A stretch of 63,621 nt of DNA, the filler included, from Lenisia limosa (taxonomy: Eukaryota; Protista; Breviatea): assembly GCA_001655205.1 (NCBI GenBank). It is 10 parts of 10 records of this genome, joined end to end, with 100 filler letters (N's around TTAATTAATTAA, not from the genome) between each part and the next. Parts side by side here need not be neighbours in the genome. Positions count along the whole stretch, not along the records: positions 33,614 to 35,594 come from LPNZ01008228.1; 9 more parts are not named here. One strand, given 5' to 3'. The notes beneath the pieces are model-generated. The model had not been told where the DNA came from. It saw only the letters and a program-made list of their open reading frames with translations, and ran no database searches. Position numbers and translations under genes: made by a program. How positions within the stretch are numbered: the first letter of the stretch is position 1; each line of letters begins with the position of its first letter. Below are positions 33,514 to 36,489 of this stretch, piece after piece.

Positions 33514-33679
33514 NNNNNNNNNNNNNNNNNNNNNNNNNNNNNNNNNNNNNNNNNNNNTTAATTAATTAANNNNNNNNNNNNNNNNNNNNNNNNNNNNNNN
33601 NNNNNNNNNNNNNATATATTATGATATTATATTGATTTTATGATACACTGAATAATATCTCCTCTAGTTATCCCATTAG

Positions 33680-35510
33680 ATTCTCCGATGGAAGGGAGAG
33701 GAAAGTGAGGCAAAAGGAACTGTTTAGTCTGGTTCACACAATCTGTGAGGCCCACGGCTTTACCCTATTGGGAACAGCAGGGGATGGGTAAGGGGGTACG
33801 GGTGAATTTCAAAGCTGTTCTTATTTATTGTTTAGAGATTCGGGGATTCTTGGGGACCAAGTTGCGGCACTTGAAAAGGTTAAGGATATTGAAGATAAGA
33901 AGAATATTCCAATGACGAGGTTTATCCAATATTGGCCAAAAACCAAGGGTGCCCTCCCAGAGCGGATGAATTTTCAAGTTGGAAATTGTCTGTTTCCATT
34001 CACATTTCATTTAGGACCCATACCACATCCTCTTGAAGGCATTTAATCGACTGATTCGGAGCCCCGAAAACAAAGAACAAACTTGTGTGATGGTTAGTGG
34101 TGATCGTCTAGTATACATTATACATCAGTGTGATTCTTCGATTCATACTAATTATCAAGGTTGGATCCACAAGAGTGGATTACACCACCTTTGAAGCAAT
34201 TTTGGGGCTGGAAGGCTGTAGACTCACCCAAGCCAACCTCCACAACTCATCCAACCAGTATGTTGTGTGTCTTATAACCATTATTCCATTTTCAGAGACT
34301 ACTCTGCAATGCGAAATATGCTGGATTTGTCCACTGTTCAACTTCTACAATCAGTCGACACACCGGAATGTCAGGTAAATTTCTAACTTAGTAACTTAGT
34401 TAATGTACTAATAACCAAGGCTGCCGCCCTTCTCATTGAAGCGTTACGTCTTTTCGGCGCGGGTATGATCGGACTAAACCCCGATGGGTGCAATCTCACT
34501 CCTTGTCACTATACCTCCAAGGAAGAACCAACCTGGGCTGAACGGCTGAGGTATGAAAATAACGACAATTGTATCACTAGTAACTATCATAGCTTCGTAT
34601 GGACTGCCACTATGATATTCCGCTCCTTAGAAAGAAAGCACGTGAATTGGATCAAGTCCGCAGATGGCCTCAAGGAAGCCGCAAGACATAAGGTCAAATA
34701 CCCCTCCGGCAACGGCTTTACCCATACATTCCTCACGCCGTCATTCCTCCAGGTTGGATTCTGAACTTTTGTCTTCTCCTCAGTCTCTTTTTTATTTCTT
34801 TATTAGAGCATCGAAGTCAACGCCGCCAACTACACCGCCTTTCTTGTGTACATGGCAAAGAGCTACCCTGACACTCCTGTACACCTACACAGAATAGGGT
34901 CGCAAGTCTGCTTCTTTTTTTTCTTCTTTTTGAGACACAGAGTTTAAGTTTTTTTTATTATTATCTTCCAGGTACTCGAAGAACTTCATCGGCTTCTGAG
35001 AAGCATTTGTCCCTCTTATTCATCCTGGCTTACGGAGCTGACACCCACCAACTCGGGCTCAGCCTTAAAACAGGTTGTAGTTCTTTCTGCAGTGAATGCC
35101 AACGTATGTATCTTTGGCTTACTTTTTTTTTATTAGTGATTCTCTTTCTCTGCTATTCATATATGTAATAACACTCTATTTTAGGGAGATTTCAAAGATC
35201 CAAGGAAGCGGAACAGAGGAGAAGCTGATACCACTGTGGCTACCCCCATTCAAGAGATGGATGCTGAAACTTGTAGAGTTGCTGTTCAGGCTGCTTTTCC
35301 AATTGCGAGGACCCTTCTAAAAAACGGAGGCGCTGATATCTCTGAGTAGGATTGTGTTTTATTACTTCCACATACACATTCATCTTCTCCAAAGCAGTCA
35401 TTTGATTTTTCCTAGAACCCCCCGCCAAGCTGACCACCCTTATTGCCTCCCAACTGCTGTTATTGAAGAAAAACAGGTATCAAAAGGGCAACTCCTTGAT
35501 GTTGCAAAGG
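33680..35510 (+). mobile_element. Intron-rich DDE transposase gene, P-element/THAP9-like; both ends truncated by contig limits
   Basis: About 11 exons splice in frame with canonical GT-AG to give GTAGDGDSG (catalytic-D block), NFQDPYHILLKAFNRL (DxxH motif), SNQDYSAMRNML, RLSFVWTATMIFRSL, FLTPSFLQSIEVNA, IGSQVLEELHRLLRS (catalytic E at 34978-34980) and FKDPRKR. Confidence 0.75.
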
Positions 35511-36489
35511 GTGATTTTGTTCATATTTGAGCAATTTAGCTACAATAAGTAACTCGCAAGTACATTGCTTTGTTATACAGTATTTCTTAATTTTNNNNNN
35601 NNNNNNNNNNNNNNNNNNNNNNNNNNNNNNNNNNNNNNTTAATTAATTAANNNNNNNNNNNNNNNNNNNNNNNNNNNNNNNNNNNNNNNNNNNNTTCACA
35701 GCGTACCCGTCATACTCGTAAAATGCATTTTGATATTATAACATAATGTTACTATCATATTTCTTTGTAAAATTGGTCTCAAATTTGTTTTTACCATTTG
35801 AAACCTTAATGGTGTAATTAATTGGGTCATACTCGAAAAACAAATGTCTATCGGATTTCACTAATTTTAGTTCGAATATTTTGATTATACCTTCCTTATA
35901 TTCTTATTAGTCTTTAGAGAACAACCAGCTTGGGCTCTTGATGGAGAAAAAGGACTCACACTCACCCCTGTACCTATGCATTGCCTGTGAAGAACTGCGC
36001 CTTTTTGGTGTGGAGGTGTTTTGTATTATTATTATCATTATTTATATATTTATTGGTGATATTTTGGGCTTTTTTGCTTTGTTTTGGAGTGTGTGTTTTG
36101 ATTCTTTTTTTATATATTATTATGTTGCCAGCTTTTTTGTGGGGGGTGGGATTCTTGTATGTGCTTCTATTTTATAGCAATATGTACATATGTGTTTTTT
36201 TTTTTCTATATCAGGCAACATACCAAAAAAACAATCACCAAACTTCTAAGACAAAGAACCTCTAAAACCCAATAGTTATTTCCAGTTTTTTGACTGTGGT
36301 TTAGTTTTTATGAGAGCTGAGATATATATTTAGTAAAATCTAGTTAAACAAATGTATGAAGCATATTTTTCTGGTCAATTCGTTTGAGGGTTGAGGATTG
36401 CCAATACAAAGAAATCTTCTCAATGGATACACTTCTGGTATCGCCCGAGTTGTAGTGAACGGTTTGATTGGGTCGGGGAAGACCGCTAG

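Follow-up and report, generated by a model that had tools for sequence, protein, structure and literature searches.

A transcribed, intron-rich gene of a microbial eukaryote with candidate motifs of a P/THAP9-like DDE transposase

Introduction

Which gene occupies positions 33614-35594 of a 63,621-nucleotide (nt) stretch of DNA from Lenisia limosa (the window, assembly GCA_001655205.1), and could its product be a transposase? This piece of 1981 nt, taken from record LPNZ01008228.1, had been read from its sequence alone as an apparently intact, intron-riddled DDE transposase gene of the P/THAP9 type, a claim to which we refer as the original prediction. Here, we found that the piece covers the middle of a protein-coding nuclear gene from a microbial eukaryote, and that this gene is real, transcribed, spliced and polyadenylated, with an open reading frame. 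The attribution to a protist made in the original prediction is plausible, the sequences being those of a eukaryote in a metagenome. For the encoded protein, our best reading on the basis of its motifs is a DDE transposase of P-like type or a protein derived from one, with a probability of roughly 0.55.

Results

Splicing and reading frame

The public sequence data came from two runs of one 2016 study, X1 and X2, whose Logan contigs we aligned to the piece to assess splicing and depth. The library type of X1 is unrecorded; 99% of the sampled words of the piece are present in it and, because these include words from introns, the run can be treated as DNA. In X2, a metatranscriptomic RNA-seq run with polyA selection, 39-51% of the sampled words were present, a share such as a spliced transcript would leave. 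Along the piece, exon-like segments of 48% GC alternate with short, AT-rich stretches (24-38% GC) that begin with GT and end with AG.

We observed ten splice joints directly in the X2 contigs, eight on a single transcript contig of 1231 nt (depth 29.9) and two on a contig of 228 nt (depth 2.6). Every joint is GT..AG and matches the junction derived from the reading frame exactly, which bears out both the canonical introns that the original prediction had named and its expectation that transcripts would use these junctions and leave the frame unbroken. Its range of intron lengths, roughly 37-110 nt, is too wide: the longest intron inside the piece measures 81 nt and not about 110. The introns, each seen as a joint in X2, are:

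33788-33835, plus strand, intron 1, 48 nt
33978-34014, plus strand, intron 2, 37 nt
34093-34159, plus strand, intron 3, 67 nt
34258-34295, plus strand, intron 4, 38 nt
34375-34419, plus strand, intron 5, 45 nt
34551-34592, plus strand, intron 6, 42 nt
34753-34806, plus strand, intron 7, 54 nt
34906-34971, plus strand, intron 8, 66 nt
35104-35184, plus strand, intron 9, 81 nt
35346-35415, plus strand, intron 10, 70 nt

Joined across these introns, 11 exons (33668-35476) give a stop-free frame of 420 codons, which grows to 431 when the open stretch that runs on into the upstream intron is counted, in line with the predicted frame of more than 400 residues. With the splice pattern fixed by RNA, the chance that 420 random codons stay open is about (61/64)^420, roughly 2e-9. 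An apparent stop codon, TAG at 35347-35349, is removed with intron 10 and the frame runs on to an eleventh donor at 35476/35477 (CAG/GTATCA, the slash marking the junction), whose acceptor lies beyond the piece. The 1231-nt transcript leaves the piece at 35476 and goes on in frame as NHRECLQQLA, in letters absent from the piece. The gene extends past both ends of the piece, and the description as apparently intact goes beyond what the piece shows: the piece cuts the gene on either side, and the TAG is not its stop. The remaining parts of the piece are the following, the assignments to a transposase core being candidates:

33614-33667, plus strand, last 54 nt of a proposed 359-nt, (TA)n-rich intron, GC 0.17-0.28; putative acceptor CTCTAG/T at 33667/33668
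33668-33787, plus strand, exon ending ...GFTLLGTAGDG (candidate strand beta-4 and second catalytic Asp); 3' junction from RNA, 5' boundary proposed from DNA
33836-33977, plus strand, exon DSGILGDQ...ERMNFQ; both junctions in an X2 RNA contig
34015-34092, plus strand, exon starting DPYHILLKAFNRL, with the D(2)H motif; RNA junctions and translation
34160-34257, plus strand, exon of the presumed insertion domain; X2 RNA contig, depth 29.9
34296-34374, plus strand, exon with (N)QDYSAM, presumed insertion domain; RNA junctions and translation
34420-34550, plus strand, exon with LNPDGCNLTPCH, presumed insertion domain; RNA junctions and translation
34593-34752, plus strand, exon ending FLTPSFLQ, presumed insertion domain; RNA junctions and translation; variants of the single-nucleotide polymorphism (SNP) type and higher depth in X1
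34807-34905, plus strand, exon SIEVNA...HRIGSQ; RNA junctions and translation
34972-35103, plus strand, exon starting VLEELHRLLRS (candidate catalytic Glu and helix alpha-4); RNA junctions and translation
35185-35345, plus strand, exon of the C-terminal region, the TAG at 35347 being unused; RNA joins 35345 to 35416
35416-35476, plus strand, exon with the frame continuing beyond; RNA contig runs past 35476
35477-35594, plus strand, first 118 nt of the next intron, cut by the contig end; donor CAG/GTATCA, X2 loose end at 35476

Two further features of the introns may be mentioned. Intron 6 is itself in frame and free of stops, and its retention would add the 14 residues YENNDNCITSNYHS. In several introns, a CTAAT- or CTAAC-like branch site precedes the AG by no more than about 10 nt.

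Upstream extension of the gene

How far does the gene reach beyond the piece? A contig of 4718 nt and coverage 253 (ENA ERZ3820729 NODE_3703, hereafter L002), to which a 65-residue opposite-strand open reading frame (ORF) recorded on it had led, contains the piece over its full length. Its reverse complement (L002rc) is 100% identical to the piece, shares its last base at 35594 and extends it by 2737 nt on the upstream side. In this extension we infer, by eye and from DNA, five further exons separated by GT..AG introns of 31, 34, 59, 38 and 359 nt. With these putative exons included, the frame spans 617-625 codons with no stop; the proposed donor of the 359-nt intron, AG/GTCAGA at L002rc 2432/2433, preserves it. 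The protein would thus comprise at least about 620 residues, with its C-terminus beyond the contig. An automatic gene model for the upstream region over-split it into tiny exons and was dropped in favour of the by-eye model.

The proposed 359-nt intron (L002rc 2433-2791) is made of (TA)n-like repeats and palindromes with a GC content of 0.17-0.28, whereas the other introns of the gene all measure 31-81 nt. At the other extreme, the putative introns at L002rc 1852-1882 (31 nt) and 1977-2010 (34 nt) are shorter than the shortest intron confirmed by RNA (37 nt); if they are real, very short introns are spliced in the source organism. Further coding-like segments lie at L002rc 1-1650, upstream of the exon with the coiled coil. 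Among them are an open frame that starts with an ATG at L002rc 171, the basic stretch KTKNRVPVRKTSHK and a low-complexity stretch rich in Pro and Ser; no homologue and no family was found for them, and they could encode the N-terminus of the present protein or belong to a separate gene next to it. Scans of the contig for Rfam families and tRNAs were empty.

Motifs and protein architecture

The spliced frame contains GDGDS, QDPYHILLKAFNRL, NQDYSAM, FLTPSFLQSIEVNA and SQVLEELHRLLRS. The motifs listed by the original prediction (GDGDS, QDPYH..K..NRL, NQDYSAM, FLT....SIEVNA) all occur in it at the places given, and introns do interrupt them as GDG/D, Q/DPYH and SQ/VLE. In residues of the by-eye model, the candidate landmarks are:

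1-22, three-heptad leucine zipper (a/d positions L, V, L, I, L, L), on an exon with weak bZIP/leucine-zipper Pfam matches
about 94, ...ASLYARVRHALPWILPSESTLRD...
148, KDEIV, candidate first catalytic Asp
243, ...GFTLLGTAGDGDS
293, DPYHILLKAFNRL
506, SQVLEELHRLLRS

The order along the protein is therefore zipper, D, D, D(2)H, an insert of 217 residues and E, with the catalytic candidates picked by inspection. The first two Asp candidates are 95-97 residues apart, the Asp of GDGDS is followed by DPYH after 47-49 residues, and 217 residues separate the Asp of DPYH from the Glu of SQVLEE. A CNLTPCH cluster (C-x4-C-H) lies 108-114 residues past the D(2)H motif, with more Cys at +23, +45 and +83; no clear four-ligand zinc finger was recognised around this cluster, although a distant Cys could contribute. 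AlphaFold was run on the only contiguous foldable piece, 111 residues of the insert, and returned an unusable model (pLDDT 41.5).

Discussion

Family assignment

What kind of protein would this be? We read it as a probable cut-and-paste transposase of the DDE/RNase H type, or a derivative, that belongs to the C/DxxH group and is nearest to the P-element/THAP9 superfamily. The leucine-zipper coiled coil would dimerise the protein, and a helical DNA-binding region (...AS.YARVR....LPSESTLRD...), possibly a helix-turn-helix (HTH) to judge by its motifs, would come next. In a split RNase H core, two Mg2+ would be bound by the Asp residues of KDEIV and GDGDS together with the Glu of SQVLEE, and the stretch from DPYH to this Glu would form the 217-residue insertion domain. 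In the RNase H-like fold of the P superfamily, the three DDE residues sit on beta-1, beta-4 and alpha-4. The enzyme would act on the ends of its element, where it would cut and join DNA. In this picture, we infer the upstream exons as well as family, fold, catalytic residues and activity.

P transposase is built from a coiled coil, an HTH, a split RNase H domain with an insertion domain and a C-terminal domain (PMC7776569), and the same order of coiled coil, helical DNA-binding region and split RNase H-type core is suggested here by the motifs. The published catalytic signatures are D230, D303, D339(2)H and E531 in the Drosophila P transposase (DmTNP) and D304, D374, D414 and E613 in human THAP9 (hTHAP9), which gives spacings between first and second Asp, second Asp and D(2)H, and D(2)H and Glu of 73/36/192 and 70/40/199, respectively (PMC8230255), against 95-97/47-49/217 here. 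The motif reads D(2)H instead of C(2)H, as in P transposase and THAP9, a form that is not in itself specific to P, and the insert of about 190-200 residues before the Glu has its counterpart in the 217 residues found here. The order of motifs, the scale of the spacings and the D in the motif thus agree with P. We also presume that P-like proteins carry LPS.rTLrD and DE[MI] at corresponding places; this agrees as well, and serves as a lead rather than a test.

A number of results weigh against a P-like transposase. The combination of loosely spaced D, D(2)H and E is not rare by chance, and both the first and the second spacing exceed the P/THAP9 values by 10-25 residues. The C/DxxH motif is common to five superfamilies, including Kolobok, hAT, MuDR and Dada (PMC9587614). 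A THAP finger (C-x2-4-C-x30-60-C-x2-H), a feature of P transposase and THAP9, was not found in any single frame of the 2.7 kb upstream, where a finger split by an intron would escape; THAP has been reported as restricted to animals (PMC7776569). Another difference is the gene structure, with 3 introns in the Drosophila P element as opposed to 16 or more here if the proposed upstream introns are counted.

Database searches gave no help to this reading either. The queries were single exons and upstream open pieces (26-115 residues), the joined exons 6 and 7 or called ORFs, and the negatives are weak because exons of 26-63 residues give little power. Pfam, searched at E up to 10 with nine exons and with eight open pieces from the upstream region, yielded no relevant family, the P-element models (Tnp_P_element and the THAP9-like RNase H, GBD and C-terminal models) included. 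A PDB sequence search with five pieces gave chance matches only (for example antibodies, NGF and Cse1), P transposase never being among them, and the ESM Atlas, queried with two pieces, returned scores of at most 0.69 and no family. Exons 6 and 7, the sole contiguous stretch of two exons (111 residues including 14 coded by the intron), found no true relative by phmmer among 1.84 billion representative proteins. A homologue search with three ORFs called on the contig returned nothing but these ORFs themselves. The family assignment, which no significant single-exon match accompanies, is at present an argument from motif order without statistical support; of the original P/THAP9-like claim, the fit in motif order and spacing stands, and support from profile, pairwise or fold searches did not materialise.

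Two apparent matches were discarded as spurious. The sole phmmer match, a repeat protein, aligns to the intron-coded YENNDNCITSNYHS, and the sole match of a metagenome scan is a bacterial membrane protein of the DMT/EamA type that shares LRLFGAGMIG.

Could the resemblance be coincidental, and the gene be an orphan host gene unrelated to transposases? All single-piece searches were negative, every ORF called on the contig is a singleton among 15 billion proteins, a search of viral contigs gave nothing, no orthologue appeared in any collection searched, and the motifs are short and made of common residues. What makes coincidence unlikely in our view is that six features follow the order of P transposase, namely the zipper, LPS..TL, DE[IM] (these two by a comparison that we presume to hold), a hydrophobic strand with DG, D(2)H..K..N and SQ.LE..R, that the spacings are comparable with the published P/THAP9 values, and that searches with exons of this size have the low power noted above.

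A DDE transposase of another C/DxxH superfamily, i.e. Kolobok, hAT, MuDR or Dada, would share the common motif. Pfam has no model for Kolobok, KDZ and a number of other superfamilies (PMC5751038), so that the blank Pfam result fits these too. Kolobok occurs in protists, and most of its transposases carry a zinc finger downstream of C/DxxH (PMC9587614), which is where the CNLTPCH cluster sits; however, most Kolobok transposases have a defined finger, their target-site duplication (TSD) being TTAA, whereas the cluster here forms no clear four-ligand finger. The hAT transposases (Hermes, Ac, Tol2) likewise have an RNase H core that is split, behind a C(2)H motif, by an insertion domain of large size. 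In hAT, this motif is close to the second Asp and the protein ends in a hAT dimerisation domain. In the present protein, D(2)H takes its place and lies 47-49 residues downstream of the second Asp, and no dimerisation domain (PF05699) was found in the exons scanned, the C-terminal exons lying outside the contig. With the D in the motif, its distance from the second Asp and an insert of about 200 residues all closest to P, we regard another superfamily as more improbable still than an orphan gene.

Mobile element or host gene

Does the gene still sit in a mobile element, or has it been domesticated? We consider the chances of the former to be about even and those of the latter to be lower. The Drosophila P element ends in 31-bp terminal inverted repeats and makes an 8-bp TSD, and the 3' end of the present gene is outside the contig. 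The Logan contig of X1 extends 1529 nt beyond 35594.

A young element whose numerous, almost identical copies were collapsed into one contig is conceivable but somewhat doubtful. It would account for the 253x coverage of the contig, for an X1 main path of depth 219-304 next to single-nucleotide variant contigs of depth 2-18, for the fall of X1 depth from ~304 to 219 at about 34766 and for an X1 contig that joins the path at 34906 but differs from it upstream; a tandem array of an 11-bp unit (4.5 copies) near the 5' contig end points the same way. However, a minor strain in the metagenome would look alike, and 253x could mean one copy or many, depending on the single-copy depth of the organism. 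Moreover, at 90% identity or more, none of six ORFs was found on a second contig, and the contig holds no inverted copy of the 11-bp unit. As to the copy number that the original prediction had proposed to check, a single assembled contig carries these ORFs, yet the X1 depth is heterogeneous.

The local observations behind these points are as follows. The X1 assembly graph is fragmented at 34670-34765 (exon 7 and the start of intron 7), with main paths at 258-304, SNP-type variants at 2, 7, 12 and 18 and a long downstream contig at 219; the variants reflect either several copies or alleles or a mixture of strains. The contig that matches from 34906, the first base of intron 8, rightwards has at least 255 unlike letters before that point (...GGACAAATACGGTT/GTCTGC...), and the break falls exactly on the exon/intron boundary. 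It may belong to another gene or to a copy that shares the start of the T-rich intron 8. Neither these letters nor the other loose ends occur elsewhere in the 4718-nt contig, and a copy with an internal deletion is thus not demonstrable. The 11-bp unit, AGATCTCTGAC, occupies L002 4635-4683, and none of 200 shuffles reached 4 matches. In gene orientation, the array lies ~90-130 nt upstream of the ATG of the first long ORF, at the 5' end of the contig, and is preceded by a palindrome, GGGGATTTTGAAGATCCCC. It could represent subterminal transposase-binding repeats, a promoter element or the cause of the assembly break.

Less probable than a young element, and unlikely overall, is a domesticated, single-copy host gene derived from a transposase. 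The single assembled copy, the spliced and polyadenylated transcripts, a frame open through 16 or more introns (the upstream ones as proposed from DNA) and the retention of the candidate catalytic residues speak for it. Against it, the heterogeneous X1 depth has to be set, as well as the lack of an orthologue in the collections searched, by which neither synteny nor purifying selection is demonstrable. High intron number is also no mark of a host gene, since in intron-rich protists resident elements, too, can have transposase genes with many introns. The most far-reaching combination, a deeply divergent P-type lineage without THAP that became a host gene with a host-like intron density (16 or more introns, several of them within catalytic motifs) and a retained triad, and hence an independent protist counterpart of vertebrate THAP9, appears to us decidedly improbable.

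Significance

Mainly, the locus is an example of a real eukaryotic gene that was missed by prokaryote-style gene calling and by single-exon searches. If the protein is of the P type, a superfamily with few records beyond the animals would gain a member that is expressed, rich in introns and very divergent. Allomyces and the Pucciniales are non-animal groups for which P elements have been reported (PMC5751038), and the gene, if confirmed, adds a very divergent member to these. Were it domesticated as well, it would show that a host had independently recruited a P transposase.
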